From: Klebsormidium nitens
Lineage: Eukaryota > Plantae > Klebsormidiophyceae
Reading direction: 5' to 3'
Assembly: GCA_000708835.1 (NCBI GenBank)
Contig: DF237482.1
Coordinates: forward strand, 1 to 62,046
DNA: 62,046 bases
A program made the translations under genes and the position numbers. Below the pieces are notes generated by a model, which did no database searches, was not told the DNA's origin, and saw only the letters and a list, made by a program, of their open reading frames with translations. Every line of letters begins with the position of its first letter. Positions within the stretch are counted from its first letter, which is position 1. Positions 6,210-30,500 of the stretch are shown piece after piece.

Positions 6210-8480
6210 ATCAGCGCTCACTCCAGGAGGCTGGCAAGGTACGTTAGCCGCATCAGAGGTGGCTCGTTTTGGTGCACGCGTGCTTCTCTTAGCATACAGC
6301 GCGTCTCCATCCTTTTTGTCGCATTGAGCATACGGGCAGGCTTGTCACGAATCGCTTGAAGTGCTTCTCTCAGAAACTGAAAGCATTTGCAGAACGCCCG
6401 TCGTACTACTATAGGACGACCCTTACTCCATGCAATGAAAAGGGCATCAAAGCCAGGACTTCGGGACTGTTGGGAGATTCGTCATCTATGCACACAGTGG
6501 AGAGAGAAAAAAGCGATTCTTAATAAATGTTTTGAAGGTCTGTTCACATCGCACCTGCTTAGACCGCTGATGAGCTGGCTTCGCTTGGCCCTTTGCAGGC
6601 TATTGCTCTGTAGGCGCATCTCGACCGGAAAAGGCGCAACCTACGGTCTGCATCCTATCATCGCCCAAGGTAAATTCCGGCACTACTTGGAGTTGGCTTG
6701 CCGGCCAATCCGGGTTTTGGCTTGATCGATACTCTGCTGAGAAGATGCGACATCTTTCATGTAGTATTTCAGTTGGAAACGCTATGAAGAATATGAGCTG
6801 GCTTTTGCGGAGCCCTTGGTTGCAGGATGGTCTGGCAATCCAGGCGATCGGTTGAACAAGCGTGTAAACCTGCTTGCAGGTACGGGCACATTTGCGCTAC
6901 CGGCAGAGACGAAGTCGGCGCTCTCGGACGATCACGATGATTCTCTTTGACCAAAAAATGTCGTCGAGCGACCCATTGCGTCTGAGTTGTGTGTCAGTAC
7001 AAGCTGGCCAATTGCCGCTGCGGAATTTGTCGACTCAGGTTGGTCTAAGAACGCACAAACTATAGGTTGTTTGGTGCCGACTGGAGTTCTCTTGAACGGA
7101 GACCGGCTAAGTAGCCTGACGGTCAAGCGATTTGCAGCTCACTCGGTGACGATAGTTCAGCCTTCCTTGTTTTTGAGAGAGAAACAATCCAGAACCACCA
7201 GTTTGTTTTGTGCCAGGTTGGACTAAACGCACCCTCTGCAATACAAAGATGCTTTCTCACTTGTAATGGTCCGCCTTCTGCGCTCAGAGGGCGGAGTGGA
7301 ACATTGTACTTTGTTTTCGAAGCCAGAGTGGAAGACAGATTCATAATTAGACTGACGCCGACATTTATAGACTCCTGGAGCGCCCGATTGGCGCCCGGCA
7401 CACCCGTTTTTGACGTCTGGCATACAAGCTTATACGCGCTTTGCTTTTCCTGGTCAAGCCGGGTCATCATGTACGGCAGAAATCATCAAGCTACATGCAG
7501 ATAGGCAATCGTGATTGCGGGTGGTCTCGCTAGCTGCGCGCGCGCTTTGATGGCAAGTCATTTTGGGTAGCCAAGCTCGTGACTAATAAATTTTCCATAA
7601 TGATTATACTCATTCAATTTGCGCCGCCCTCGTTAAGCCCAAAAGCTGACGGTCGGCAGCCTGCAGCAGCAAGCCTGCTCGGGGAAGGGTTATGGGCGGC
7701 ATCTTACCGAGAGACGAGTCATATGTTTCCATCGTGAACCCTTGTGTGCACATTGGTGCAAACGTTCGAGCCAAGCACTGATGTTCGACACAGCTTATGC
7801 CGGTCTTTTAAATCTAATACAACCTTGGAATCAGGTCCTGGCGGTCCATGTTCATACTGAACTACGGAAGCAGTGCTTGAACATAGCAGAGAAGCTTTGA
7901 TGGCAATGATAAGATGAGTCACGTACAGATTCGCATCGAAAGCTGAGAGGATCGGAGGAAAGCAGCCCCTTGAAATACCCTTGGAAGCTCGTCGAACAAG
8001 ATTGAACTGCACCCTAGATCAATGGTCTCCGATCCCATGCACACTCTTGAGTGTCCACCACAATGCTCATAAATCCAGACACACTCTAGCAAGCCTCCGC
8101 TCACAACGAGTGAAAGAGCCGTCATCCGGCTGCCTGCTCTAAGTTGTTTGGTCGCACTTTGTGCGAAGCCCGGGAATGACTAGCGGAACACGGGCCTCTT
8201 TCTAAATGCAACGTACAGCCCTCGCGCAGAAACAAGCTTACTCTGCTAATCACCCGTCCTTAAAGTGATTTTGCATCGTACGTAACAGATCAACCTTATG
8301 TTGTGAAGAAGGTCCATCGAGACTCAGACTTCAAGACGCACGAGACAAAAGCACCCTGCCGTGCCTGATTGCGGCACCTCTGACAGTGAGCGCGCTGCTC
8401 TTTCATGTCTTCGACAGGGCCACCTTTTCTAGCGTCCCCTGATCAGCACCTTTGTCGCCTTCAAAAGCTCCTTTTCTGCC

Positions 8481-11400
8481 ATGGCGTCCTTTCGACTTAA
8501 GCAGTTCAGTATGTTGCAAAGGCCTTCCGTTCCTGCTCTTATCCTGACGGTCGGGATGCTTTTTATCTGCACCACTCGAGCGCGCATGCCGTGTCAGACT
8601 GATACCTTGGGGCACTATTCGCAAGACACGTTAGCGGGCTCTTCGGGAAACGAATATTCAGGGGTGGAGGCCCCGGTCTCGGGCAAAGGTGGGGCGAAGG
8701 CGCATAGTAGGCACGTCAGTAAGGTGAGCACTAGCCGCGGCTAAGAAAGGTCCTTTTCTGCCACCTCGTATGCCTCTCATCAATGCTATCGAAAGTTGAG
8801 AAAGGGAGAAAATAGAGAAGCAATCTGGCTATTTTGGCGTGTGGGGATGCCAATAAAGAGCTGTTCTCGAAGGCTTATGGCCATCTCTTTTGCCCACCAG
8901 TAAGCTTTATGCCTCTCACTCAGCTGGGTTCGTGATTTAATCCGCGAAGTGTAGGACGCTTTCGCTTTTTCGTTCTGCAAGCAGGACAATCCTGCTTTGG
9001 AACCAGACTCTCATCTCATCTCGCCAATTTTATTTGTGATTGGTTGCTTCTCGTTCCGCAAATTTGTAGGCAGCTTCTAGATCCGGGGAAACTCTTCCCA
9101 CGAAGCAGGCGTTTGAGATCACTACGCCGCTTATCCGGGTCGGCCCCGAGCCCACGTGCCACGTCACCCTTATGCCGCCCACCAGATTCCCCTCACAGCC
9201 CAATCGTAAGATGACACATCAGCTTCAGTCACTGCATCGATAGTTTCGGACGTGAAACCAAGGCTCCTGCGCACGGGGGGTGGAAAGCCGATTGCAGATA
9301 AATCGAATCCAACAATGATTCTGAGAGTTAGGATTGGGTCTCCCTTCAAATAGAATGCCTGCTGATGCTTAGAAGCATTTTCCCCTCACTCTGGCAATAC
9401 AGAAGTTCAAATGAGTGATGCTGAAGTTCTATAGTTGACAGAATGAGGGGGAGAATGAGATACACCCGTAAGAAGATATTGAGCTGCTGTGCCTTGTTTT
9501 GGGCAAGTACACTTGAGCTTCTGCAAAGACGGCCCAAGCCATATGACGGCCTCATAAGAAGGTGTAGTCAGAACCCGTCAAGACTTGTGTGCATCTTCTA
9601 CTTTACAGAGTACTACAACACATTCAATGGAACGTACACTCCGTCCCCCAAGTGCGACCCCCGAGGGAGGGGCGACTGGGCGCAGATCGTGCTGACGTGG
9701 ACCGCCCAAGTGGCCGGGAGACAGTTCGACCGGCTGGCGGGAGTGTGGGTTGGTGGCGTGGAGGTAGGAATAGGAAACACCAATATTGAGTGCCTTAATC
9801 AAAGAGGTTGTTGCTGTGCTTTGAGAATCCAATCGACAGCCCAAAATAATGTGGTCCCTTGTTCCGAAGCCTCCCAGGCGAAGCTGCGCTTATGCAGAGG
9901 ATGTGTGATCTCGCCCGAGATAAATCCATGATTCTCCAAATGTCAAGAGAAATGAGCCTTCCTGCGAACGTCAGGGGTGAAAAGTCTAAGCACAAGTTCT
10001 GTTGTTGCAGGAGACCCAGCCTTGCAAATCCGGGCTGAGATTTTCAGACAGATCTCGTTCACGACCCCGAACCCCTCTTGAATACCTGAAAACAATGTGG
10101 GCGTTCCTTCTTCTTGCCAAGAATCTGAGCGTATCGACTTCGGTGCCGAATCTGACAACTCATTTCTTCTTGGCGCCAAGCTAGCGAAGCTAGCCTTGCA
10201 AAAACATCTGATTTTTCCAGATTCTGCGGACTTCGACCGCGGAGCCGCGCCGCGGCTGCGTGCGCTGGACGATCGACAAGGACGTCATCCAGTATGCCGC
10301 CCTCTTTCGAACCGCGCAGCCAATCAACGTGCAACTGGTGCGCTGAAGCTGTTGCAAACGTTTCCCAAGCCCACTGCTAGAGCACTTGATTATTAGAAAA
10401 CGACAAATTTCAATTATGAGAGGTGTGAGCTTCGTTTGCTAACCCCTTCTGCACCATCTCCTGACTGCTCAAAGCCACTGTTTGTTTGTTGGGCTGCCAT
10501 GATGAAATGCCGGATCTAACTGCATCTAACCGCTTTCCCCCCAGTCCGTTCCGTTACTTGCAACTATTCATCCATTTCTTCATAAGAGCTGTGGGGCCTT
10601 ACCTGATCCGTTTCCTTATGTTGGCAGTGTCTCTTTAATGTGAGGCTTCTGATTCTTGGGACCCGCGTCGCATTCAGAGCGTTTCTGTACTTCAAGATAG
10701 TTTCCAGTCGATTATCGAAAAGAGCTCACAAACATCCTCGGTCGCTAATGACCTTATTGTACTCGTCAAAGCGCAATCAACTAACGGGAGCCGTTTCTTT
10801 CCCAGAGTAACCTCGTGAGAGGCAACCTCACCGGGGTGTACACCGTACAAATCACGCTCGCATTTTACGCGTCTGGCCCTATCAACGGGCCCAGCGCGGT
10901 GGTACCTGACGTCATCCTTCCGCTCCGCAACGGTTACGAAAACGGTAAGCCGTGCCTCTCCTGCTTTTGGTTCTCCAGCCGGTGAGACCTGATTCGCTTA
11001 CGCACCCCCATATTTGCTTCCGAAAGTTTAATGGCTTTCTGCCAACTGATTTACCAATGATCACCGGTTGACTTACCCTCTTTGCTCTCAAACAAGGCTT
11101 GATGAATCGACTCTCCACGTGCCTTCCAGGTTATTGGGTCTCCATCCAGCCAGAAGGGCCCCTCAAGTGAGTCTCGTTTCCTTCAAGCCTCAGCTTTCAT
11201 GGGCCGTCTCTTAATTTATATCTATCCCTTTCAAAGCATTGAAAAGGGCCCACGTCTCTGCGGTGAAGTTTTACAAACTTCCACTGTCATATCATCTCCG
11301 TCAAAAGTTCTATCTTTTGGTCGTCCATCTGTCGATGACACTCGGCTTGTCTCTCACTCGCATGTCGAAGAAGCTTCACCCAAACCTCCGATGGTTCAAT

Positions 11401-14371
11401 CCACGCGATCTGCTGCAGCTTGTCAAACTTTATATCAGTCCCTACAAGTACGCTGCGCGCAATCGTTGAAGTATACTACAGCGCTCAAGGTAATAAAAGC
11501 GCCCGGCTGAAATGATTCTGTCGCCGCAAGCGGAATCCGCTCTGTCCGCTCGATCCCCATCCGCATCCGCTCTGTTTTCCTCTTTCTCCGTCGCAAAACA
11601 TGCACCCTGCCGTATCGTCATGATCAAAATCAGGCGCCCCGTAAAAACGGTTTGCAAGGCTCTCGGCCAAGAGTGTTCCAGATCCTAGCTGCTGCTTGTA
11701 ATATTACCGTGCGCAAGTGAACAATCTGCGTAAAAGTCAGCAGTTTCCTGGCCCCATAGCCTGCTTTTGAAAACCCTGCCAGTGTCTTATGTTCCCTTGG
11801 GATCCTCCAGGCTCCTGTTCCGGTCCCGACTGCCGGCTCGGAAGAGACGAGCAAGAGTTCTGGTACACCTATCCGCCCTCCCGGTACGAACCAACCGGGG
11901 CGTTTAAGGAGGTGAGCTCCTTTGGATTCGTTGTCAGGTTAGAAATGCATCTTATCCGGGTGCAAGCCTGGCGAGAGATTCCAGATGATTTTTAGAGCTT
12001 TACTGGAGGGTCATTAGCGCCATGAATGGAAACGTAATCGAAGGCGTAGTGAGATGGGTGAGGTTAGTTAGGGGGTTAGGGTGGGTATGTGCGCGGAGCG
12101 TGTAAAGTCGAAGTTTGAACATTGTTTCAAATTTGCTTTTCTTTAATTCGAAGGGGCTCACCTCCAGGAAATCGAGCCTTTTAGAGCAAACTGCTCTGCG
12201 TCTCGCTTACACTTCTGCAGCAAAACACCCTTCCAATCCATCCACCTTTCCGTTCCGCGCGAGCGCAGATCCGGCTCCTGATCGACGGAACGGTGGTCGG
12301 CGTCGTTTGGCCGTTCCCGGTGATCTTCACCGGGGGCTTTGACCCGCGGCTTTGGTCGCCCATTGTGGCAATCGGGGCGTTCAACGCACCCACGACTTCC
12401 GTTGACGTTTCGCCGTTTCTGAGCGTTTTCAACGATGGGAAGCCGCATACTTTCACGCTCGACATGGGCGAGACCGTCGGGAAGTTTTGGCTCGTAAGAA
12501 TTGGTTTGCTCAACTTCGGGCTGATTCGCAATTTCTTACATGCTTGGATCCAGTGACCTAGGTAATGGTCAACAGCCAAGTGATATAAGCTGAACCGTGC
12601 GGGTTTACAGATGCGGCCTCTGATTAGCTGCGTGCGCGCTCGGTTCGGGTTGCCGTTTCACGCTTCACAGAATATAGGAGATTGTCGTCATAGCAAAAAG
12701 TCTTAACTGCTTAACAGAGCAGCAGGAAAGACCAGCAAGAAATAAATTTGTTCTGAGGAAGTGAGCTCCAGGCGGCCGGACTTGCGCCGTTCGCAGTCTT
12801 CGTGCACTTCTTTAAGGCGCGTCTGAAGCTGTGGACCTTTTAAGCCACACGCGAAGACAAACCGTTACGAGCTTAGAACGGTTTGTATTGAGTAACTTAT
12901 TATCCTACACTTCTTGTGGAAACCTGACCGCCCTCTCTTGCGGATTCAAGTCTCCAAACCTGCACAAAACGAAGCGCTCAACAAGCAACATTCGAGGGCT
13001 ATAAGTGCTAGCCTTACGCTGATCCCGCGCTAACCCTGCACTAAGCGCTTCCTTCTGCACAACAGGTGGACGCCAATTTGCAGCTCTACCTTGACCCCAA
13101 CGCAACGGAGCCTCTTTTCGCCGTTCTAGAAGAGTATGACGTCACACCGGAGCCGCAACGGCTGTCCAAAACAGCCCAAAACGTCTCACTCGACGTCAAT
13201 GAAAACGTCACCCGGTTTCGGGTTACTGCTAACCGTACGTTACGAGCCCGGGGATCCGTAGTGACTTCCGAAGGAGACGTCTTGACCACAACGGTTAGCG
13301 CCCATTGAGAGGACGTGTCCTACTTAAAGATGGGCAGAATTGCTCGATGTTGTCAGGCTGCGGTAGGTCAGTCAGATCTTCTTCGCAAGACACTGACGAA
13401 AGTCTGAGCTGCCGAATGGTAAAAGGTCCTTGGAAAAGCGACGGATCAAAGCCGCGGTTAGCAGGCTACTCGCCCTGATTTGTCTGGACTTGTCTGGTTA
13501 AATTGATTCCTCTGGTTAACTTGAACGTTCCATCTGTCAGACGAGCAGTTAAATTCCTTCAACTTGGCCTGATCCATCTGCTATGATGCTCCTGAAGACA
13601 GATTCCGCCAGATTAAATTGCTTACCCGAAACCTGCTGTTTCCTTCTTGCAGATAGGTGAAGATTATGGGTTTGTTAGCGAGCAAGAAGTCTCCCTAGAC
13701 GGCAAACGCGAAGCGTGGAAGCAGCTCACGACTATCAAGTCTGAACTCGAGACTTTGTCCGTCAGAGAGCAGTTAGCGACGGTTTACTACCGACGTTCCG
13801 CGAGGTTTGAGTATCCAATCAAGGGATCCGCTGAAAAGTAAGTCCCTGTCTCTTTCTCCAGGTTCGAGGACGAGTAATTGTTGACGACAAGTTGAGTCCG
13901 CACAATTAACTCCTCTTGAGTTGTTCCTCTCCCGATCAGTAAGAAAAGTGCTCTCCATGCTTTTGTGGTGAAGGTTTCTTTGAATGCTACAATTTCTCAA
14001 GCCCCAAGGCCAGCTTGGAAATTAAGCTTTTCAAATTCAATGGTCGTCTAGGTTCGCTAGTAGTTTGTCCTTCTTCAAAGTCGAAACTTGCTTTGCACAA
14101 AATTCAATCTTTGCGTTCATGCAGGAACCAGAGTTTCATCGATCACTCCTTCCTTTCAAACATCAAGATCTTTCCCATGCCGAACGAAGCGGTCACTGTG
14201 GCAAGCGTCAGCAATCGTCAAGTAGTCCAGACTGTGCCAGGTAGTAAGAAGCACTTTTCTTTCAACGAGTTAAGATCGTTCGATACAACCGCGCGTTGTT
14301 ACTACAGAACTTTGGTCTCCTATCTCGGGCGGGGCTTTCTGAGTGACTTGGTTTCTGCAACTGGATGTTGA
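8481..14371 (+). CDS. Peptide-N4-(N-acetyl-beta-glucosaminyl)asparagine amidase A (PNGase A family), secretory, ~627 aa
   Basis: 12 phase-compatible exons: 8481-8723, 9070-9205, 9609-9763, 10221-10337, 10806-10944, 11130-11166, 11419-11489, 11811-11911, 12269-12493, 13066-13293, 13653-13837, 14125-14371. Family motifs GRQFDRLAGVWVGGVE-ILRTSTAEP, EFWY, WPFPVIFTGG.DP.LW.PIV.IGAF, C-terminal CYYR; hydrophobic N-terminal segment; many N-x-S/T sites. Confidence 0.93.
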
Positions 14372-15162
14372 TGCTTCGAAGCAGCTAAGCGACTGCCTTG
14401 AGGACTTCTTGACAACTTATGTATAGAGTGAGACCTATTAGACAGCCGAGCTCTTTTGTTTTGTGGTTTCAAAAGAGTACTTGAGAAGCCAGATTCCGCA
14501 AGCATCATATTGAACATTGCACGAAAACTTTCCATAAAGCTACGGAGTGCTTTCGATTGGGCACCAGTTCTCGGCACGCGGCGGACCGCCAAGCGGATGG
14601 CCTGGTATGCGTAGTGGTTGTGCATGGTTTTGGGAATACAGGATTGAGAAGCCGTCATTATCATTCCCCTATCTCGGGGGCCGTTAATATTGCTTTCGCT
14701 GCGCTGCGACGGCCAGGCTATGTATTAAATTATGCTCATCAAAGCATCCATGATTACTGTCACTACATCCAATTCCAAGCAACCGCCAGAAGACCAGCAC
14801 CCATACGACGTATGTTTCCGACCGAAGTGCGGACTCAGAATCATCCACCAAGATACACATCCCAGCTCACTACCAGTATCTTCTTGGATTCTTTGGAGCA
14901 TCATTGAATTATTCTTAAAACGCTTAGACAACCATCATTTAACAGTTCTGCAAACGTCGTGGCCGAAGCTGTCGAACTACAGAGCTGATGCTGATCGCAG
15001 TATGAGATCCAGGCAAGCCGTATGTGATGCTACATGCTGGATGCATTGCAAAACAGAGAATCTTATAAACTTCCTCAGCCAAGCATGTACATCTGATTCT
15101 CTCCTTCCTTTTCTATGATGGTGGTTATCACTGACCCTGTAAGGACCAGCAATCCTTTACAA

Positions 15163-18100
15163 TCACTTCTGCCGGTGCTTCTTTTGGGCAGCCTGTGTAG
15201 CAAAGACAGCGTCCGCTTTCGACGAACCTTCCCTTCTCGAGAGCTGGATAACGGTGTCACTGAACATCTGGAACGACCGGTTGTGGCTGACGCAGAGCAC
15301 TTGGCTCTCCTTCGAGATGACGTCCTAGAAAAAGCCAGCGCACGAGGGGTCAGATCCAAACAACCTCTTTTCTTCCTGACCACCGGCGTCTGAATCAAGC
15401 TTTGGGATTGCAAGGTCAGTAGCGCCAGTTATACGACGATCTCGACTGCCTTGAGACGTGCTGAATTCATTGAACGACACTATCACTGCATGGAACTCGG
15501 ACCAACCCTTAGGATGAAAAGGTTCTGAGGCAGGAAGGAGCGAAGGCTCTCCCCCCGGCTCTATTCAATCAGATCAGGGATTCATGCGGTACAAGGGAAA
15601 GAAATCTAGTGATTGAAAAACACATAACAAGCAGAATTAACACTTTAGACTGCAATATTGAACGTGGTGCTGGGCTTGCCTTGATGAGCGCAGCAACGCG
15701 CCTCTGGTTCTGCTCGTCGAGAGCGGCATCGACTTCGTCCATGATGTACAGGGAGCTCCGCCCGTTCATGGCGACCGTCAGGATGAAAGCGAGGCTGAGC
15801 ATGGTGCGCTGGCCGCCTGCAGGTTTGAGGAGGCTTTAGAAGCGCAGCTCTGATGATTTGATCTCTGAGCGAGCAAAAGCCCTCCTTACTCAAAGCCCGT
15901 TGCTGATATCTGAGAGAAGAAGGTGATGCGTGCGCTCACAAAAATTCAGCGCTCGTGAAGTCCGAGTGAACGTCCTTGATTAGCTCTCTCTTTCGTCTGA
16001 AGACAACTTCGTCATGAGGTGCGGATCTTAAAAGCACCATATTTCACTGCCACAATGGAACCAACATTAGACCTATGACATAATTCTAGGCGCCGAAGGG
16101 CTGCTGAACCATGAGTATGAATCTGACCCTACGCTTGCATAAAAGTGTGAATCCAGGCGTGCTGGTCTCACCTGACAGCTCTCCCAGGTTGCTCTTCCAC
16201 TCCGAATCTTGGTTGCAGCGCCCGGTGGCTACGCCCGTGCTTGCGTTCTGGAAAAGAAACTTCACCCCGTCCTCCACGTGTTCCTTGACCTTCACGAGAT
16301 CAACCCTGCATGCAGAAGGGGAGGGTCAATCTGAGAGGCTTGATAGAAACGCCGTTGGGCCTGGATAACGTAGGGAGTGTGCGGTCTTCTGGACGATATA
16401 CCATAGAAGCTAAGACGCTTGGTGGATTCGGGCTTGCAACGTGAGACAAAAGTGGTGCACCTGGTTCCTTTAGTGTTTGTGTCCACCGCGATTCTTTGTA
16501 AGTCTTTCAGATTTAGCAGACTTCCCAGTCATCAAAGGGAAAATTGCAATCTTGTTCTTGACCCCATTTCTTCAGCCTACCTTTTGTCTGGCAGCAGTGA
16601 CTTGCAGCAATCGATGAACATAGTCCTGATACTCTTGAAGGTCGCCTCGTTCGCCTTCTGAACCTTGTCGCGCGTCGTGCGGATGCCCTCATTCAGTTTC
16701 TCGATGGACACCAGTATCGACTCGGCTCTCTCTTTGAACACCTGCAAAATAACCCTGTGACTTTTCCGATGCACACTAAGCCCGTGGCTGAGCTACTCTA
16801 CTGGCATGTATTTAAGGCTCTCAAGAAGAATCAAAGGTTTGAATGAATCGTTTGTGATACTAGAACGAACTCTTCAGAATTCAATCACATCCATGGACAG
16901 CTAAGCCAGGTCGAACTTCCAATCTTGCGGAATGTAGCCGTGTCACTGAATACCCAGGTCACTAGCGAGCGGCCAATCAGGCGTCTACTGAAGAATCCAA
17001 CAGGATAACGCCGTCGCGCGGAGATAAATATGAACAACAAACCAAGGCTTACGACTTGACAGAGGTCGTCGAAGGAAGTGAGAGAGTTGATGAAAGAGAA
17101 TTACCTGCAGGTTTTCCACGCGCTCTTTGAACGCCACTTGCTCGTCCATCGTGACCCGCTGCTGTTCCCCTGCCAGGCGTTTCTTCTCGCTTATCAGGTG
17201 GCGCCGTCGTGCCTTTGCTGCCGCATACTGTTTCTCGTCTTCGATGGGATCCTTGAGTTTTAGGGCTTCTTGGTCGTCCTGCATCGATGAAGTACGCTGA
17301 CACATTCGAAGTGCAAGGGAATCCGATGTTTGTTATAGGAAGGTCCGGCTAAACACTTTACAATACAACGAACATGAGTGAGGCTCCCAGCGCTTGCACA
17401 TATAGGCAAGTCAGATGCAGAACCATAAACAACACATGTCAAACGCAGGGATTGATCTGGGCAGGGCTTTCTGAACTAAAAATGAGCTTACCTCATGTTC
17501 GTTCGCTAGCTCCGCAATCTCCTCTTCCAAAGCCTTTCTCTTCTCTGTCAGTTGGCCCTTCTGCTTCTCTAGCTTTTCCGCCGCCTTTGAGCTCTGTCTG
17601 ATTGCTTCTTCGCACTCTTGCGCTCTCCTCAGGGCCACTGCCCTGTCCTCCAACATCTTCTTTCGGGCGACCAGTTGGGAAGCTTGGAGCGCTTCGACGC
17701 GCGCCAGGTCCTGTCGGTGAGCTTCGAGAGCCGCGGTCGTGCTTCGAATGCGCTCTTCTGAGTTGGTATCCAGGACGACGCTCATCTGTAAAACGGACAG
17801 ACCAGAATTGGATAAAAAGCTGGCAATTCAGTGGGATCGATGCAGCAGGATCTCCATGATCCAAGAAACAGGATATCGCTCCGGCTGAGCATTCCGATTT
17901 CACTGAGCCCAGGACTTTCAAAGCTTTACCACAGATGATGAGGGCGTTGATTGGCTTATTAAAGACGTTTACTCTTGAGACACTTCTACAGATATCATTT
18001 ATCGTGCTTTCTAGTTCCGTCCGTTGGATCCTGCATCCTATCAAGTTTCGGAAAGACTCGGCTCCTATTCCGGGTGTTGAAGATTCCTTGTCGCATCAAT

Positions 18101-21100
18101 GAAAGCTTTCGATGCATTCCCGGTCCCACTGAAGGCGCACCTCTTCCCTTAATGTAGCTTCCTCTTCTCTCGCTTCCTCCAGTTTGCGCAGCACTTCGTC
18201 GACCGCGTTCTGCTGCGCCGTCTCCTCGTCCACTGCGGCCTCCAGAGCTTTTGCAAATGCCTCCTCTTCGGATCCAGCCTCTTCTGACGTTTGGTAGTCC
18301 CGGAGGCGTGCTTGTTTGGTCGTGAGATCTTGACATAGAGACTCCAGCTTCTGCTCAGACTCTTCTTTGGATAGCTTCGCTTGGAAGAGCGCGACCTCCG
18401 CATGACTCAGCTGCGTTTGGATGCAACGGACGACGGTAAATTTTGGGGTTCCAAGGATACCTTAACTTGACATGGCTCCAAAAACCTCGTCAAACGGAAA
18501 TAAGGTTACGTAAACTTCATCGAGCTGATCTCTTCACCTTCCATCTTACAAGGAGTTTACCTATTTCTGGTTGATTACATGATGGAACGCGGTTCGAAGC
18601 AGCTTCAGCCACAAATACATGCTCCCTTCAGTAGAAGGCCAGATAAACAGGGGCAAACATGATTCATAAAAAGCTGTCTTAAACTTTTTCTACTCGATAC
18701 GAAACGGGAGATTGCCAGGTTGTGACAGTAGGTTACCTGGTCAATCTCTTCTTCCTGCGCGCGCACGCGCGCTTCTTCCTCGACCGCTTTCCGAGCAATC
18801 TGCTCCTGCGCTTGGCGAAGATGCTCGATTTTCTGCATTGGAAGATTGAGTAGACTTCAATGACCACGACTGTGTCACCAGCCCGGTTTGTTGGTTTATT
18901 TTTGGGCATTTTAAAATTTTAAAACAGGCAAAAGTCAAGTGACCACAAAGCAAGTAAACTTCATGTAGACCTTGACGTCGGAAGCGGTTTGCAAGCGAGA
19001 TTCTCGTTTCAAGGTCAGAGTAGAAGGCAGAATTATGTTTTTTAACAATCTGCTCGATCACGCTATGAGTTGGAGCTGACCTGATCGAGTTCGCCAGACC
19101 TCGTTTTGGATGTCTCCACTTCACGCCACAAGGAGTCGCACTTGATTTTGTTGCCAATGAAAGAAGTCCCGGACGCTCCTCGCCAGCCCCCCTGCACTGA
19201 GCCCGATCTGCTAACATTGCCATCCAACGTCACGTTCCACAGCCCGTGCTTCGAGATCAGGTCGCGAGCTACCCGATCGTTGGCAGCTATGACGTAACCT
19301 CCGAAGGCCTTTTTTAGAGCCTTGGAGAATTCAGGACTGAAATTGAGAAGGTCGAGCGGAAGGGTTACTTCGCCGGACTTGAAAGATTCCTGGGCCTTTC
19401 TCTGCTTGTAAGCGACATCAGGGCTTGTCAGGCGGTCGAGCGGCCAGATGCGCCTGAAAGGGCTGTCGCGAACGGTGGACTGCCAGAGCTCTAGCAGCCG
19501 TCCAGCGTCCGGGGTGGTCCTCACGACGCAAACATTTTGAAGCGACCCTGCAGAAAGATTCAGAGTCGTGTTAGCAAACATTTGAAACAATGGAAATCCA
19601 TATTGCTGCTCTAGGTTGAATATTCGAGCATGAAAGAGGCTGGTCGTGAACAAGGACCAAATTGGATGGACGTATCATCTTTACGTTCCTTAATAACGGA
19701 TTCAATTAGAAATTTTAAGCAAACTTCGCACAGCCTAGCTGGTCATGAGGATATGCATCAGCCCGCTTCTTAAACAGCCGTACAAATCAGTTACGAACCT
19801 GTGATTGCGCTCAGGGCTTCCAGGTACTGCTCGCATTGAAGGCGCTCCTCGGACTTGAAGCGGAAGAGTGAGTGTAAGCTCCACGCCGGAGTCTTTGCCT
19901 CGTCGCCGCTCAGCCTGCCAAGTAAGGCAGAAGCCACGCAAGCCTTTCTTTCTGTCCCCTCTTTGAGCTTCTCAAGCTTGTCTCTCTCGTTTGACAGGCG
20001 CTCCAGCTCAGCGTCAAGCTCGGCGCGCACATTCATTTCGTTCGAGCGCTCGTTATCGAAAATCCTGTTCCGCTCCTTGCTGCTCCGTACCTTCTCGCGG
20101 AGCGTTTCTGCCTTGAATTCTGCTGCTGTTATTGCGAGAGCAGCTTCTTCCACCCTCTTTGCTTGATCCTTCTTGATGATCTCTGCCGCTCTTATTTCAT
20201 TCTCTAGTCCGTTGATGATGTCTTGGATATGTCCTTTGCTTCCGCCTTGAGATCCGAGCCGCGAAAGGCGCTTCAAGTCTTGCTCCATGCGTGAGACAAT
20301 CTCCTGCTTCTCGTCAAGAGCCCGCAATGCTTGCTCGTGAGCTTGATCGAAGCGCTGGACTTGAAGTTGGACAAACTGCAGCTGCAACTCCGCTGTCGCT
20401 CCCTGCAAAGAAGGGGCGATGTTGAAGTCTTTTTTGATGCCTTCCCGCCGTGAGATCGGTCGGGATTCTCGAAGGTGGGCACACAAAGCAAAACATAATT
20501 AATATAGGGAATCTATTAAGGATCTGACATATCGTCAAATGATTGATTCGGAGCCGTTTTATGAGAGCTGGGACCTACTTGTACAATGGTGCATGAGGGC
20601 TGAGACAGAAACACATCAAGTTCGTCCAGAGATTGATGTAACGGTGGAAAAATCTCCCTTCTAGTCACGGGGCGGCTCACCTGTTCCAGTCTGCGTTTCT
20701 CGATTTGAAGCTCTTCCTCTGCTTGAGTCACCTTCTGCAGGAGCTCGACTCGCTCCTTTGCCACGGAGTTCGTATCTTCATCCTCGTTGCCTTGAGTGGC
20801 TGCGGTTAGCTTTTCTATCGCGTTCTTTTCCTCTAGCCATCTCGACTTGTCCTTTTCCGTTCTGGATAGTTGCTCATTAGTGTCGTCCGTGTCCTCCTGG
20901 AGGCTGGCGAGCTTTCTGAGGGCGTAATCTTTCAACCGAGTCTGTACGCCTTCTAGATCATGCTCGATCTGCATTTCAGAAAAGGTGTCTGGTTCAAAAT
21001 GCACTTTGTTTCACAGATAATCGGACCGGAAAGTCTGATGCTTCTTCGACTTCCCAAAAAGCTCGAAATGAGAAGCTTTCATGCAACAAAATCGAGACTC

Positions 21101-22676
21101 AAACTGCAAGTTTGTTTTGTTACCTGCTTTTTTCGATCCATCGCTCGCACTCTTTCTTCGTCCAACGCAATAGCCTTTTCCAGGAGAGAAACATTCTGGT
21201 TGATAGCGGCGAGACTCTTGCGTGTGTTTGAGATCTCCTCGACGGCTCGGCTGACCTCCTCGTCCCAACGCCCAGCACCTGCATTTTCTCGCCCGCTGTA
21301 TCAATATTGATCTATTTAGGCTACGCGGTGCTGGGGGATGTTGAGGTAAGCAACGTCCCTAGCTCTTTGATGCATGTAATTTGATAAAATATCAATATGT
21401 CGTTCTTCGGCTTATGCACCTTGCGACAGGTTCAATGAAGTCGTTTCAATTTCATTCTGACAAGAAACCTCGAAAAGTAATCTCAGAATGACAAGTGGTT
21501 CGCTTACCTGACGCGCTCGATATTACAGAAGCAATGACAGAGGCAGAGTTGTTGTCGGCTAGCTCCGTTACTTTAGATTGGTGCAGGACTGCAAAAGCGT
21601 CCTCGAGCAGTAGGTGGCTGTCCCGTAAGAACTCCTAAAGAAGGAAAGAATCAGAGTCAACTCAGCTGTGTACATATTACCAGTCGGAGAAGCAGTCCAC
21701 GACATCAAGTGTACACATCGTTCGCATGCCGGCCAAAACAAAAGAGAATAATCAACTTCGCGCTAGCTCTCCACATGAAACCATCAGCTGATGTGTCCAT
21801 GTTGAACCTTGACCTAGTATCGGAAGTCCTGATTACCTTGACATCTTTCATGGTCTTCTGCTTTCCATCCAACTTGTACTGTCTTGTTGAATCTGGTAAG
21901 ATACGAGCCTCCAGTGTGAAGATCCTGAGGCTCTCTCCTGTGCTCTGGCTTGCAATCTTGAGCTCCACCTCACACGGCTCATCCGTATCCGTGCTTTGCA
22001 GTTCAGAAAGATGCTGAACTCGCAAAGAAGCTGGCTTTGCGCATAGTGCGAAGGACACGGCATCTGCAGAAGAGTAAACGACGAAGCTGCACATCTTTTG
22101 TTGTCCAGCTTTTTGATTGAAAGGCAGAAACTCACGCATCCTCAGCTACCTTGGAAACAATTATATAGCGGATTTTGGGAAACACAATGAGATTTGTCAG
22201 TTACTGATGTATGTTTGAGCAAGACCTATAGACTCAAATCCTGCAAAAGAATGTGTCCACAGAGACCTAACATATGACTGGTCATAACAGCCCTTTCCGA
22301 TTCTCACCGAGAACGTTACTTTTCCCAGCTCCATTGGGCCTGTACGCAGAAACTCCAATATCAAGAAAACGTAGCTCAGGAGTTGCAGATTACAGTTCAT
22401 CCACAGCTCATGGAAATTGCAAGGCAAGCTGCAGATCAGCAGATATGCGTTTCTCAGTCTGCGCAGTTACTGAGCAGTGACCTCAAACGACCCTCAGTCA
22501 CGATAATTGGAGATAGTGGTCTACCTCTGACCCCATTTCCTTTGTACTCACCCAGCTATCAGATTGAGCCCAGGGCCAAAGCCAAAATGCTGCTTCGTGT
22601 CTCCAAACGACTTGAAACTAACAACTGTGATGGACTTGATGTAGACTTTTGTGCCAGTCCCTTGTTTTGGCGACAT
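15163..22676 (-). CDS. Divergent SMC-family ATPase (closest to SMC2 in C-terminal head), ~1150 aa
   Basis: 16 phase-compatible exons (descending): 22676-22552, 22339-22308, 22063-21837, 21634-21508, 21278-21124, 20968-20681, 20402-19799, 19547-19081, 18832-18737, 18410-18141, 17785-17492, 17278-17105, 16741-16581, 16305-16172, 15816-15680, 15324-15163. Walker A GPNGAGKSN, Q-loop HQSKV, hinge VTLDGNVSRSGSVQGG, signature WKSNLGELSGGQR, Walker B YIMDEVDAALD, H-loop SQVLCVSHN, two long coiled-coil arms. Confidence 0.93.
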
Positions 22677-23785: not shown

Positions 23786-26700
23786 TCAAGATGATGCTCG
23801 GCTGGCCTCTATATCTTGGAACTTCTTCTCTACCTCCGCTCGCTTCTCATCCTTTCTCTTCTTGTTCGTACTGCTCGTCTTGCATTTCCCGCACTCCGAG
23901 CACCTCTCCTGTGTACCCTCGCGAGTGCTATGGACAGAGAAATGGGTATAGCCCTCACCCCTCCGTATAACGGACTTGCAAAGAAAGCAGAAACTCGTAC
24001 GACAATTTCCACAATGCACCTTGTTACAGCCGTTGTTCTTGTCCACTTCCACCCCGCACTCAGGGCAGCTGGACAGCACCGCCGCAGTCAGCGCCTCCTC
24101 CCGCTGAAGCCGCAGCTCGTCTTCTTCGGTCCTTGAACCGCTGCTTCTGTCTGGCCCCCGACTCATGTCGCCACTGCCCCAAACCGCTTCGGAAGCACAA
24201 CTCTGCCCCTGAGCGCCCCCTTCCGCCCGTCTACTCCTCCTCGCCACCTTTTCGACTTTCTCAGCACCAGCAAACCTCTTTCCGATCGAAGCCTTGCATG
24301 CGTTCGACTTCAGGCTTCTCTTCGTCTGGGTGGCTTGTCCCGCTTGAGCATCGGCAATCCTCTCGCTCGTCCCCTCTTCGGCTCCTGCTTGTGCTGCGCA
24401 CTTATGGCCCTGCTTCCATATCTGCTTGCAGCGGATGCACGTGCTCTTACAGAAGTGCTTTAGGATTGGATCCGTAGAGATGATAGTCGCCCTCGTGCCT
24501 ACTCGCCACCACTCTTTGCAGCTGGGACACAACACATTCTTTGTTAACTTCCTCTTGTCTTTTTCCAAAGGGTAATCTTGATTGAAGCACTTGAGCCTCA
24601 ACTTTTCGTAGAGGGGCTCAGGCAGTAAGGCCTGCAGGACTTCGAGTGAGAGGGCTTTGGGGCACTCGCTCTCCGAAAGCGCAAAGCATTGTAGGCCCCA
24701 CGCCGCGTCGCTCTCTTTGTCAAAGACTATTCCGTTGGCGCGCTTGATGATGCAGTTGATGCAGAGGCGGTGGCCGGCTTCGCAGTGCAGCGAAGAGAAG
24801 TGGGTGACCGACCCATAGCAACATCTGCAAACGAAGTTTGAGAAAAGTTAGTTGAGCATGAAGTCTATTGAACAACTGTGCCAGGCGCTAGCGGGATAGG
24901 GTACGCAGGTTGCCGCTCTAGCCAGACCCCCGTTGGTTTTCTAACGACGAAAAAAGCTGTTCCGATTACCATTCTGTCTTGCTTAACGAAGACTGCCTTC
25001 AGAACCAGCAACTTCGAGCTTGATCTGTCGGTCATTCGATCCTCATTAGCCCTTCTCTAGATCTGAGCTGGTCATCAAAAATGGTGTCAGATGGACTTCG
25101 ATTTCACAGGTGGCCACGTTAAGTCCAAGCGAGGAGATGGATAACGGCCTCTCTTAGAATCGAGCGACCAACAATAGGCCACATCTCATGAGTCAAGTTT
25201 TCCAGATTCAGTTCCAAGTCAGTGTCTCAATACCGTCTACTCATTGGTTCCCCGATCGGCTGAGCAGGCAGGACACTATGAACTCACCCGCACTCAAGTG
25301 GCTGCACTTTTGGGCCCATCCAGGTCGATGACATTGACTGGAGCAATTGAAGTGGCCCCAGAAGAGCCCCCACCGTCCGCACCCGCTTCTCGCTTGATGC
25401 GCACGGGCTCACCAACGCAGGCTTCCTTCTGCAGATGAGATGATTTGCCTACTTATAGAATTCATTTGGGCCAAGTGAGACGAGTTGGGTGACGCACTTG
25501 GTTTTGCTGTATGAGTATGACAGGATGTCTAACAGGCACTGAGGTATTACTATCTTCAAGCATCTCAAAGTCTTCTTGACAGGAAGGAGAGCAGTCCAGG
25601 CCCAGGCAGCAGCAGTATGTTCAATCAGCCAACAAGACGCATATTAATTGGTGGCAGCAAGCAGAGCGCCGCTTAGCGGAATGGCCTGCCAAACTAAGCA
25701 GGCATTCTCTACCAGCATCAATCACTCGTCCGAGCTCAGAAATCCTAGTTGAAGGCTCAAAATGACCTCTAGGTTACTTTGATAAGGCATCATTCTGTCA
25801 ACCCTCTCTTTTCAATTATCGCTGGGTAGAATGCTAGCCACTGGAGATCTCCAAGCAAAGCCTCTGAGTTGAAAAGATGTTTACGCTTGTGAGTCCGATT
25901 CAGAAAAAGCACAGGTACTTTGTTGAAGATCCTAGACTTCCCCCGAAGAAGCTTGGACATAATGCAAGTGATGGGGCTTGTAAACCAGACTTCATCCTGT
26001 TCTGAGAGAATAGGGCCCGCTGTACAGGAGTTTCCTGTGGGCTGAATCGCAATTGACAATGGAAAATGCTTGAAGCTTCAACGCCCCAATCTGTGGGGCA
26101 TATTCAATTGTCAGTGAAGAGCGGACAGCCTGCTCCCTGCAAAGTCTGTATCCTGTTGCAATCTCACCTTGACGGAGTGTCTGCGTGCTTCAAGTCCCAC
26201 TGCGCCATTGTTCAGATTTGCAGACGAGGCACGGCGAACTCCTGTCAAGTTTTCTGAATCTTTTAGATTCAAGCCCCTTCTTGACCCCCACTGTTTCCTT
26301 CTCGCTCCCCTCGCTCGTTCCGCCCTCTCATCTGGTTCAGTTTTGATGGGAGTTTGAGCCCAAGACTTGGTGTCCTGGTTTGTCGCGCCACATCTGGGTC
26401 AACTGATTGGACCTCCTCTACCTTGCATGCTACTCTAGCAGGACACATTAGGCCTGGGTTTGTGTTCTCAGTCACTAACGCTTCCTTCTTGGCCTTGCCT
26501 TCCCCTCCAGCTTGCTGACTTTTTATCTCCTTCTGCTTGGAGTCGCTTGCCCCCTCCTCAGAGGCCCTCTTTCGCTTGAAGGCCTGCAAGGACAGGCTTC
26601 AGGATTGGTTTGAAAAGTAGTCTGTATATGCTAGAATTGAAAAGGTTCGGGGTGACGGATGGCCCTAGAAAAGAGGTCACACTGTCCAGGATCACCTAGG

Positions 26701-27047: not shown

Positions 27048-27572
27048 TGCTCTACATTCCAAGCCGCTCCCCCCGGGCCCTAGTAGTGCTACCTGCACCT
27101 AGCCACCATCTGGCATCCCAACTCTGCCCGATTCTGCAAGGCAGCATTGCGCAGCAGATCTCATTGCAGCCAGATTGTCAAGCTGTGTCAAGTTATCGTG
27201 TATCATGATACAATCCATGTACTTTGACACCAATTTGACTCCCAAGATCTGGACTCTGCTTGATTATTGATAGAGAGAGCCACCACACAAGCTGGGGACT
27301 TGCAAACGCAGCATGGTGAAAACAACAAATGACGCTTCCCTTGAACTTGAAGGGCTTGTTTGAGGGTGAGAGCGCTTCCTTTGTTACATAGGACGGGGAA
27401 AATAGGTTGGAGACACGTTGAAGGGTGGTAAAGTCGAGGACTTGCCATCGTGCACTACGTGCCTAGTCCCTGTCGCTGGAGGCCAGCACATTGTAGCCGT
27501 TTGTCACATCAGGGTGATTGCGGTCGCTGGGGCCAACAAAAGATTTTGCGAGCTGCCATTCTATGCAGAGGA

Positions 27573-30500
27573 ATGGACATTCCTAGAAGAGCCTCGTTGC
27601 GCAGTGTACAGATCCCAGGATTCATTGCGGAGTCTGTGTGGGGTAGCGAGCTTAGCCGGCATGGTGATGCTGATTGCCACTTTGTCCTTGGGGATGAAAC
27701 GCACATCTCGTCGGCTTCTGACGCAGTGCCGAGCAACTTTCAATTGATTGGAGGACACTTCGCAGTGACCTCACTCAAGGAGCATCTCCAACAAGGCGTG
27801 AGCCAATTGGTTTCGTCTCTGGGAGGATCAAGATCTCGTGGCAGCAGCGAAGATGGTGTTGGCACTTGGAGCTCTCAGTCAGACACTGTCCTGGTGGCCC
27901 AGACCGGCACATCACCACCGCTGAGTTTTGCTAGCATCACATCCGCCGCCGTTAATCTGAGAGACCGGCTTCATAACCGCAGAACAGAAGACAGCCATCA
28001 GGTTCACCGTCGTAGTCGGCGAAAGACCAAGAAACAGGTCCGTTGTGGCCACTGCACACAATCCAAGGGTCTGTCGTCCCCGTCCAGTTCAGAGAATACC
28101 TGCACTTGTGCAGCACCTATCTCTTTCGTCTCCACAGCTGTGGGCCAAGTTGAGAAGAAGGCAGTCACACGGCCGTCTTGGGAACAACTCCTGGCCCACC
28201 CCATTGCTGCCCTGGCCTTCGTACCAAAGGATACCAGCCTTTTCGTTGCTGGCGCTCTTGCTGGTGCAACCGCAAAGACAATTACGGCGCCATTGGACAG
28301 GTTGAAGCTTCTGTTGCAGGTGCGTTGACAGATTTGATCGTAGGCTACATCTGCTGATTCTGCTTTCTGGATTTGACAGCCCTTATGCTGGTGATCGCAT
28401 CTGCATGTCGGTCACATGACTGACCGCAGAAGATTTCTTATGATGTATGATGCAGTTGGTCAGGTTCCAGAATACAGCTATCCACGAGTGTTGATGCCAA
28501 GCTTAGCAAGACCAGCATGGACGTCACATAGAAGCCTATCTGAAGACGGGTCATGTAAGACAACCTTCTATCTTGATCATTTACTTGACACTTTGGTTAC
28601 AATCTGCAGGTACAAGATGTCAACAGAAAAGCGGGAGCGGCAGCTGTTACTCTTTCTGGGGTAAGCAATTTGCGAATGCCGGGTCATCCAATCAATCTGA
28701 TACTGATGGCAGAGAAGCATGAGAGAATCAGAACGTGATGCTACATATCAATGATTGTTGACAGCAATAGAAGCTCATGGAGTTGAAGGCTTTGTGGACA
28801 AGTTTCAGACACTGGTTGTTAGCCTTTCATTTGCAGGTCATTGGGTAGACTCTTACTATGACATCCACAGTTGCACATTGCTGAGACGCTGAAGTATTGC
28901 CATCTTGCAGGCTGTTGCAAAGATCTTCAAAGAAGAAGGCGTTCTAGGTTTCTGGAAGGGCAATGTGCCACAGGTAAACGGCCTGATCGATTTCTACTGT
29001 CTGTCCGCTGAATGCGTATTTTACCAGCCTAGCACTTGGGCGACAGTTTTCCTTTTGACTCGTGGCCATCCGATCTTACTTTCTGCAAGGTGCACCTTGT
29101 ACTGTTTTCCAGTGTCCCCTGAGACTGGTTCTGCAGAGAGGGCAAGCTTCCCATATCCTTGCAGTGTTTGTTGTGAGCCTTGGCTGGACTTGTTTTGAAT
29201 CTTTCTCGTCCTCCCCTGCAACAATTCTGTTCCTCCATGTACAGGTCGTGAGGATTCTTCCATACAGTGCCGTACAGCTTTTCAGCTACGAGTTCTTCAA
29301 GGTAAATATTGATACCTGTGCATCCTTCTTTTAGTATATCATATCAACTTGGAGATCTCCTCGATAACGCCGTTCATCCTAAAGCTTTCCTCCTTGTGGC
29401 AAAGGTGTGTATCTCTTGGTTGGCCAGTTCCATCCGTTTCAGGAAGCAGAGTAGTCTCGACGAGCAGCCCTAGCTTTAGACCAATGAAAGCGTCCACTGG
29501 CCTCAGTCCTTCCCTTTTTTGGCTCGGATTCACGCAAGAGTCAACGATTTCAAGTACTCACGTTGAGTCCTTCGCTTGCAGAAATGTTTCAAGGGCAAGA
29601 GGGACGAGCTGTCGGTGCCTGGAAGGCTTGCAGCGGGAGCTTGCGCAGGCATGACGTCGACTCTGGTGAGTTTGAACGATCTCAAAGATGCAACTACTGC
29701 AGGTTCGGTCAAACCTGGCCGCCTGACCCAAGTCCGAATCTAGCCAGTCGCAGAGCTTTTCCAGAGCCGCAGAACTTGGGCCGTTCGATAAGAGTCTTAA
29801 GAGTCATCGCAGGGTCCAATTCTGCGCAGCGGGCACAGTCTTGCGTTCCACTCAGATAGGACCCTGGTCTGGCGGCCAGGTTCAACCCGATGTGCAGTAT
29901 GGTCTATCTGGGAGTCTCGCTTTGAACAACTGGTGTTCTTGCTGATGTCTAATCTTCGTCAATCTCTTTGTTTTCTTGCTTGGACCAACGGTGTCTTTCA
30001 TTGGTAGAGTAACTTCCATTTGCACTAGCACAAGACTCTCACTACGAAAGTCTTGTCCCATCCCTTCTCCTCGCTCAGTTCCGGCAAAATTGACTCCGCT
30101 TCTTGCAGATAACTTTCCCTCTCGACACACTGAGGTTCAAGATGGCCGTCGAGCCAGAGATGCGCACGATGTCGCAGGTAATTGCTTCGACGCTTCTCCA
30201 GGATTTCTGCATCCGTGTCTTCCGGGGCCCTCTTTTTCTCATGATCACAGGAGTTTTCGTACTTTTTGGTCGTTTAGACGCTCATCTATCCGCCAACAAG
30301 AGAGCCTTCAACAATGTCGACGTCGCACCTTCTGCTGATTGTAACCTGCTCCGAACGTGTCTTGCGGTGCCTGATCTTTTGCAGAAAGATTTCGGTCGTC
30401 GGTCGAAAGTGGTTGATCGACTGTTGCGAGCATGCTATTGAAGAAGGCGCATGGACTTTTGGTGCCTGCCTTCGTAAGAATCGACTATATTCCTCACTTC

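Follow-up and report, generated by a model that had tools for sequence, protein, structure and literature searches.

SMC-X, an apparently undescribed family of SMC ATPases, probably distinct from canonical SMC2, in Klebsormidium nitens and other Archaeplastida

Six classes of SMC (structural maintenance of chromosomes) proteins, acting in three types of complex, underlie the chromosome biology of eukaryotes. Here we describe a gene of the alga Klebsormidium nitens whose product does not fit this scheme. It lies on the minus strand at positions 15163-22676 of a 62,046-nucleotide (nt) stretch of contig DF237482.1 (assembly GCA_000708835.1; this whole stretch is hereafter called the window), and it encodes a member of an SMC family for which we coin the label SMC-X. 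It belongs to none of the six standard classes but is a seventh, apparently undescribed family. Recent SMC surveys count six eukaryotic families and do not mention it (PMC8665677; bioRxiv 10.1101/2024.01.07.573240), and literature searches with the accessions or locus tags of twelve SMC-X members, and with terms for SMC2 paralogues, found no description, subscription journals being largely outside their reach. The comparisons presented below lead us to consider it likely that SMC-X is a full-length, catalytically competent SMC ATPase, and that it forms a distinct, vertically inherited eukaryotic family that exists besides canonical SMC2 and is nearest to the nu-type SMCs (SMC2, then SMC3).

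The closest described relative is SMC2 (CAP-E), the nu-SMC of condensin I and II. SMC-X shares with it the length, the head-arm-hinge-arm-head layout and the ATPase motifs, including LSGGQR and DEVDAALD; SMC2 is also its best match by profile and by hinge fold, and its sister in the best maximum-likelihood (ML) tree. However, SMC-X forms a clade separate from SMC2, coexists with it in the same genomes, and its rate of evolution between Mesostigma and seed plants is ~4.6 times that of SMC2. It also has motifs specific to the family, namely a Q-loop of the form IxQxxVTxLAD, RIWPLD and GGWRG in the hinge, and VSH in the H-loop. SMC3, the nu-SMC of cohesin, is the second-best match by profile and hinge fold and lies on the same side of the best-supported deep split in the tree, but it forms a clade of its own, and an approximately unbiased (AU) test leaves the placement of SMC-X relative to the SMC2/SMC3 split undecided (p 0.38). 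The prokaryotic Smc of Smc-ScpAB resembles SMC-X in size and in motifs including the H-loop histidine, and a homodimeric mode of action like that of prokaryotic Smc is conceivable for SMC-X; yet a grouping with cyanobacterial Smc is rejected, and prokaryotic head constructs score below SMC2 and SMC3.

Specialised extra SMCs have been described before: DPY-27, an SMC4 paralogue in condensin I-DC of C. elegans, and SMC4-2 of Paramecium (PMC12629237, PMC10700549). They set a precedent for a specialised condensin-like complex in which an additional SMC takes the place of one standard subunit, the canonical copy being retained. DPY-27 pairs with a normal SMC2 (MIX-1) in nematodes, and the pairing of SMC-X with SMC4 that we propose below would be the mirror image of this arrangement. 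Both DPY-27 and SMC4-2 are young duplicates inside the SMC4 clade of a single lineage, whereas SMC-X falls outside the SMC2 clade and would be far older, because it is common to glaucophytes, green algae, ferns, conifers and Anaeramoeba. A protein of Chlamydomonas has been named 'SMC7' (Cre17.g720450); it is located at the pyrenoid periphery and consists of coiled coil only, without ATP-binding and hinge domains (PMC10473203). We considered it as a possible SMC-X member and rejected it, since in the absence of these domains the resemblance is a collision of names.

The separation of SMC-X from SMC2 was recovered by two trees. A quick FastTree of 94 SMCs placed SMC-X outside all other groups. 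For the main ML tree (IQ-TREE, LG+C20+F+G4 with posterior mean site frequencies, PMSF; 63 sequences, 545 columns), the N-terminal head, the hinge and the C-terminal head were aligned separately (domain-wise L-INS-i). Here SMC-X and SMC2 each form a clade with support of 100/100; the SMC2 clade contains the SMC2 proteins of Mesostigma and of angiosperms, and the window protein lies outside it. SMC1 and SMC4 form a clade of their own, the two SMC3 sequences form another, and cyanobacterial, other bacterial and archaeal Smc are found elsewhere. The two trees agree on these groups, with SMC-X as one clade and SMC2 as another. In the main tree, a split with support of 95/95 sets SMC-X, SMC2 and SMC3 against SMC1/4, archaea and bacteria.

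Three species were found to carry both proteins. Mesostigma has SMC-X (Mv21484) and a canonical SMC2 (Mv16537), Cryptomeria has SMC-X (LOC131062169) and a canonical "SMC protein 2-1", and Taxus has SMC-X (KI387_026302) and a canonical SMC2 (KI387_025607). The two families differ strongly in their rate of change: canonical SMC2 of Mesostigma is 53-54% identical to that of seed plants and angiosperms over 98% of its length, compared with 26% identity between the SMC-X proteins of Mesostigma and Cryptomeria. SMC-X is about 23-24% identical to plant and algal SMC2. On the tree, the path between Mesostigma and seed plants measures about 1.8 substitutions per site for SMC-X versus 0.4 for SMC2, which accounts for the ~4.6-fold difference mentioned above. 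An earlier reading of the window from its letters alone (the original prediction) had seen in this gene an additional, anciently diverged SMC paralogue under selection, with heads that depart from those of canonical SMC2, and had named an ML phylogeny as the way to check this and a normal SMC2 orthologue of ordinary branch length as the outcome that would overturn it. The phylogeny, now available for SMC1-4 and prokaryotic SMCs, places the protein apart from SMC2 and on a longer path. The departure from SMC2 is real, as the identities indicate, and the proposal of an additional paralogue under selection is borne out by the clade of its own, by the co-occurrence with SMC2 in three species, and by the near-invariant catalytic residues and the selection estimates described below.

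A profile built from 21 SMC-X members allows ranking the known families by similarity. Searched against all PDB sequences, this profile scored full-length SMC2 chains highest (370/347 bits), followed by SMC3 (313-284 bits), SMC1 (232-210 bits), SMC4 (about 207 bits), SMC6 (92 bits) and SMC5 (65 bits), with Rad50 heads at no more than 94 bits. Against 5.8 billion proteins, the named proteins beyond the members themselves among the best 120 matches were all SMC2 except for one bacterial SMC; these SMC2 proteins belong to animals, fungi, plants, a haptophyte and a diatom, and some matches were unnamed. An SMC5 or SMC6 identity was rejected on the profile, which gives these two 65-92 bits against 347-370 for SMC2 (neither is in the tree). 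Rad50/SbcC was likewise rejected, as a globular SMC hinge is present in place of the zinc hook (CxxC) and Rad50 heads score low. SMC-X is thus clearly distinct and probably of nu-type.

To appreciate how restricted this family is, we note that when 1.84 billion cluster representatives were searched with the hinge exon (HMMER), only 126 proteins were found at E<1e-3, far below what is expected for a canonical SMC hinge. All named full-length matches carry "hypothetical", "uncharacterized" or generic labels, and the precomputed Pfam annotation misses the hinge in most members. SMC-X is present in land plants (Taxus chinensis, Cryptomeria japonica and two Adiantum species), in the streptophyte alga Mesostigma viride, in green algae (Chlorella sp. 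A99, Myrmecia, Chromochloris, Bryopsis, Dunaliella, Volvox and Chlamydomonas eustigma) and in the glaucophyte Cyanophora paradoxa. Several members come from metagenomes; the genes next to them on their contigs are eukaryotic (COX5B, ELP6, DCN1-type and WW-domain genes), and because of these neighbours we assign them to intron-poor algae and not to prokaryotes. No prokaryotic member was found, and the metagenomic members that were checked are eukaryotic.

Outside these groups the signal falls off sharply. With Taxus SMC-X as the query, the score was 256 bits for Bryopsis and then no more than 100 bits for any other protein, SMC2 and prokaryotic Smc alike. No match to SMC-X was found in angiosperms, bryophytes or lycophytes by the hinge HMMER search, the Taxus query or the family profile, where the word-indexed search is known to miss some members of 40% identity; indeed, it missed the Adiantum nelumboides member when queried with Taxus. 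The absence from angiosperms is likely; bryophytes and lycophytes may have members that escaped these searches. Within the SMC-X clade the branching order is (Anaeramoeba, (Cyanophora, (metagenomic algal group, ((Mesostigma, (window, (Adiantum, (Cryptomeria, Taxus)))), chlorophytes)))). Since this is essentially the species tree, SMC-X appears to have been inherited vertically since at least the ancestor of Archaeplastida.

The only members found outside Archaeplastida are those of two anaerobic amoebae, Anaeramoeba ignava (KAJ5068991) and A. flamelloides (KAJ3437051), which make up the deepest branch of the family. They may reflect either ancient ancestry or eukaryote-to-eukaryote transfer.

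The window protein has the full set of features of an SMC ATPase. In the first half of the head, FKSF is found at residues 21-24, Walker A at 42-50, the R-loop region at 65-74 and the Q-loop at 144-155; the hinge spans residues 552-643; and in the second half of the head LSGGQR (1050-1056, split by intron 14) is followed by Walker B and D-loop (LYIMDEVDAALD, 1074-1085) and by the H-loop (CVSH, 1105-1112). The motifs of the split ABC-type head (Walker A, Q-loop, signature, Walker B, D-loop and H-loop) are all in frame. Across the family, the Q-loop glutamine, the S-G-G-Q of the signature, the D-E of Walker B, the D-loop aspartate and the H-loop histidine show little or no variation. In Pfam, the head exons match SMC_N and exon 8 matches SMC_hinge (PF06470), the latter with 26.8 bits against a gathering score of 22.5.

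The fold of the hinge was addressed with an AlphaFold2 (AF2) model of the window hinge exon, for which the family alignment served as input. The model has a predicted local distance difference test (pLDDT) score of 88, and Foldseek returned 40 PDB matches for it at E<=1e-3, those listed being all hinge-bearing SMCs (SMC1-4 and prokaryotic Smc) or SMCHD1. SMC2 chains from the human, mouse and yeast condensin hinges ranked first, ahead of SMC3, with SMC4 chains far lower; by sequence, too, the hinge exon matches SMC2 hinges in the PDB. Pfam, AF2 and Foldseek thus agree on a globular SMC hinge with its conserved glycines. The arms were seen in a full-length AF2 model of the Cryptomeria member, with which the window protein is collinear. 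In this model, helices of about 300 residues (174-472 and 641-951) run between the head halves and the hinge, in agreement with two arms folded back into an antiparallel coiled coil, and Foldseek matches it over its full length to Smc2/4/5/6 chains. In every complete SMC-X member the FKSF strand begins at residue 4-26, which leaves no room for a transit peptide. This lack of an N-terminal extension, together with the occurrence in the plastid-less Anaeramoeba, argues for a nuclear or cytosolic rather than an organellar protein.

The gene model was built from open reading segments, collinear tblastn matches to homologues (Taxus) and enumeration of frame-compatible splice sites. It runs from an ATG at 22676 to a stop codon at 15165-15163 and joins 16 exons into a coding sequence of 3453 nt for 1150 amino acids, with no internal stop (Table 1). 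Fourteen introns are GT-AG (155-363 nt) and the last one is GC-AG. The model includes a micro-exon of 32 nt that is flanked by gtacAG and GTgaga and supplies, in frame, the rest of Walker A (GPNGAGKSN): exon 1 ends in GCT GG, before a GTGAGT donor, and the micro-exon reads G CCC AAT GGA GCT GGG AAA AGT AAC GTT CTC G before GTGAGA, so that the two together encode GPNGAGKSNVL. The model is least certain at the exon 5/6 and 6/7 junctions. The original prediction had given the same span, with start and stop exactly as found here, and had recognised the micro-exon (22339-22308) with its Walker A, which is now backed by splice flanks, reading frame and conservation in a related alga. Its list of motifs (Walker A, R-loop, Q-loop, hinge, LSGGQ, DEVDAALD and H-loop) also held, and all of them could be mapped; the glycine motif of the hinge, which it had given as GX6GX3GG, has to be corrected to G-x5-G-x3-GG.

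Table 1. The SMC-X gene and its exons in the window (L003, contig of the related alga)
Feature	Position	Strand	Evidence or remark
Whole SMC-X gene	15163..22676	-	open frames, splice sites, tblastn to the Taxus homologue; structure shared with the related alga
Exon 1: start codon, FKSF strand, first residue of Walker A	22552..22676	-	
Exon 2: 32-nt micro-exon, bulk of Walker A (PNGAGKSNVL)	22308..22339	-	L003 has it at 7206-7237, also between AG and GT
Exon 3: N-terminal head, R-loop region	21837..22063	-	evidence includes a weak Pfam SMC_N match
Exon 4: Q-loop (VLHQSKVTELAD, 21554-21589)	21508..21634	-	
Exon 5: head-proximal coiled coil (neck), conserved family-wide	21124..21278	-	
Exon 6: N-terminal coiled-coil arm	20681..20968	-	same boundaries leave the L003 frame open
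Exon 7: N-terminal coiled-coil arm as far as the hinge	19799..20402	-	
Exon 8: hinge (RIWPLDRL, AFGG, G-x5-G-x3-GGWRG)	19081..19547	-	Pfam SMC_hinge, PDB SMC2 hinges, AF2/Foldseek
Exon 9: C-terminal arm	18737..18832	-	
Exon 10: C-terminal arm	18141..18410	-	
Exon 11: C-terminal arm	17492..17785	-	
Exon 12: C-terminal arm	17105..17278	-	
Exon 13: head-proximal C-terminal coiled coil	16581..16741	-	highly conserved, 92% nt identity to L003
Exon 14: C-terminal head, stops within the signature motif (...WKSNLGELSG)	16172..16305	-	
Exon 15: remainder of the signature (GQRT), Walker B and D-loop (LYIMDEVDAALD, 15716-15751)	15680..15816	-	Pfam SMC_N, E 2e-10
Exon 16: H-loop (QVLCVSHN, 15280-15303), C-terminus, stop	15163..15324	-	

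The availability of a contig from this related alga, which carries an SMC-X orthologue and is syntenic with the window across 20 kb, allowed estimating selection on the gene. The orthologue has the same 16 exons, including the micro-exon, with canonical splice sites and an intact frame of 1144 amino acids. The two proteins are 82% identical, and at the nucleotide level the exons are 85% and the introns 63% identical. The ratio of nonsynonymous to synonymous substitution rates (dN/dS) is 0.21 overall, 0.12 in the N-terminal head, 0.08 in the C-terminal head, 0.18 in the hinge and 0.24-0.29 in the arms. These values indicate that SMC-X is under purifying selection, which is strongest in the heads, and from this conservation we infer that the protein is expressed.

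Several details of the introns stand apart from these results. Intron 15 (15325-15679), the GC-AG one, has a GCAAGC donor both in the window and in L003 (13877-14286). Intron 8 (18833-19080) has a GT donor in the window and GCAAGC in L003 (10445-10692), a switch of donor type between close relatives. At window position 20557, within intron 6, one base is missing in the contig of one run, which likely represents a strain polymorphism or a low-depth assembly error.

RNA contigs revealed transcription of the opposite strand. Contigs from four runs of two studies contain plus-strand splice joints (GT..AG) at 17198-17632, 17717-18182 and 21346-22001, and each of these antisense introns covers one sense intron and parts of the adjoining sense exons. 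Of the six splice dinucleotides of these introns, two are missing from the related alga. A gene resembling peptide N-glycanase A (PNGase A) lies tail-to-tail with the SMC-X gene on the plus strand at about 9400-14400, where its exon fragments appear as plus-strand open reading frames; PF12222 is found at the syntenic position in L003. Because this neighbour is convergent and the antisense splicing is not conserved, the antisense RNA is probably read-through from the PNGase A-like gene. On the other side, upstream of SMC-X, there is a conserved gene at about 23794-24829 (minus strand by synteny) whose L003 counterpart (4372-5301) has IBR / RNF216-type RING-between-RING domains, and further on a mitochondrial-carrier-like gene at about 27390-28987.

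We weighed the distinct-family reading of SMC-X against several alternatives. A relic in decay or without coding function, whose real product is the antisense RNA, is suggested by splice joints that, in four runs, are antisense only; but an open reading frame of 3.4 kb that is intact over 16 exons in two species, a dN/dS of 0.21 and exons far more conserved than introns all contradict decay, the loss of antisense splice dinucleotides speaks against a conserved antisense product, and read-through from the convergent neighbour explains that RNA simply. We regard this alternative as very unlikely. Even less probable, in our view, is that the window protein is simply the fast-evolving canonical SMC2 of this alga. 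SMC2 is indeed the top-scoring canonical family, LSGGQR and DEVDAALD are SMC2-like, and no canonical SMC2 from the window genome stood among the listed matches of a protein search; however, the protein sits in a 100/100 clade apart from the 100/100 SMC2 clade to which the Mesostigma SMC2 belongs, the proteins nearest to it, those of Cryptomeria, Taxus and Mesostigma, stand alongside a normal SMC2, and the 53-54% identity among SMC2s of plants and algae is far from the 23-24% between SMC-X and SMC2. The least credible alternative, which we give almost no weight, is an SMC of cyanobacterial derivation that organises the plastid nucleoid. It would fit the occurrence of SMC-X mostly in plastid-bearing lineages and the partly bacterial-like motifs (DEVDAALD, the H-loop histidine). 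Against it, the AU test rejects a common clade with cyanobacterial Smc (p-AU 0.0018, lnL difference 49.5), complete members have no N-terminal extension for a transit peptide, and Anaeramoeba, without a plastid, has SMC-X.

The remaining alternative deserves more attention, though we consider it unlikely. [quoted passage not shown] Topologies with SMC-X outside SMC2+SMC3, or outside SMC1-4, survive the AU tests, Archaeplastida and Anaeramoeba, two eukaryotic groups that are far apart, both have the family, the quick FastTree sets it outside all other groups, and the hinge retains the symmetric glycine motif that is typical of homodimeric SMCs. On the other hand, the ML tree and the 95/95 split join SMC-X to SMC2/SMC3, profile scores and hinge fold put SMC2 first, well over prokaryotic SMCs and SMC1/4, no prokaryotic members were found while the metagenomic ones checked were eukaryotic, and the patchy distribution can be explained equally by eukaryote-to-eukaryote transfer. 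In its most far-reaching form, which we likewise hold to be improbable, SMC-X would be a seventh primary eukaryotic class, older than the SMC2/SMC3 split or at least than the radiation of extant eukaryotes, with a ring complex of its own that has a dedicated kleisin and accessory subunits; repeated loss, apparently in angiosperms, animals and fungi, would have left it in Archaeplastida and Anaeramoeba.

Several observations weigh against our reading of SMC-X as a distinct, SMC2-like family that is additional to SMC2. The sister relationship with SMC2 has weak support (71/61), in a tree that includes only two SMC3 sequences and does not include SMC5, SMC6 or Rad50. The AU tests rejected neither a tree that unites SMC2 with SMC3 and leaves SMC-X outside (p-AU 0.38) nor one that unites SMC1-4 and puts SMC-X amid the prokaryotic SMCs (p-AU 0.21). 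In the contigs of the four runs no spliced mRNA of the sense strand was seen, and coverage was unspliced over exons and introns. A protein search with Mesostigma SMC2, whose matches were mostly angiosperm, showed the SMC2 proteins of Cryptomeria and Taxus but no Klebsormidium SMC2 among the matches listed. We identified no partner for SMC-X, be it a kappa-SMC, a kleisin or a HAWK/KITE subunit, and the conserved gene neighbours give no hint of one. As for SMC2, CAP-D3 of Klebsormidium nitens is listed in a preprint; this implies a normal condensin, and is the only hint of a canonical SMC2 in the window genome.

How might SMC-X work? We propose that it would fold back on itself into a head, an antiparallel coiled-coil arm of ~300 residues and a hinge, and that it would dimerise through the hinge. 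A kleisin may bind the head-proximal neck, which is particularly well conserved in the SMC-X family consensus, and so close a ring; binding and hydrolysis of ATP at the engaged heads would then allow DNA to be held or extruded. Dimerisation, head engagement and the kleisin ring are drawn here from the established behaviour of SMC proteins. In the simplest model SMC-X would take the place of SMC2 beside a kappa-SMC, most simply SMC4, since its hinge and heads are SMC2-like (nu-like). Such a heterodimer in a specialised condensin-like complex appears to us the most economical arrangement, and an SMC-X homodimer with its own kleisin is its main rival.

SMC-X is a full-length SMC, maintained by selection, in glaucophytes, green and streptophyte algae, ferns and conifers, and it is seemingly missing from flowering plants. 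Its presence would mean either that an SMC complex has gone unrecognised, or that an alternative condensin with a swapped nu-subunit exists, across much of the plant lineage. This raises the question of which extra chromosome-organising task is performed in the organisms that bear SMC-X, and how angiosperms manage without it, as well as how the partner specificity of SMC proteins has evolved. Relatives of Chlamydomonas, Volvox and Chromochloris offer tractable systems in which SMC-X can be studied. Finally, the family raises the possibility that the SMC repertoire before LECA was larger than thought.

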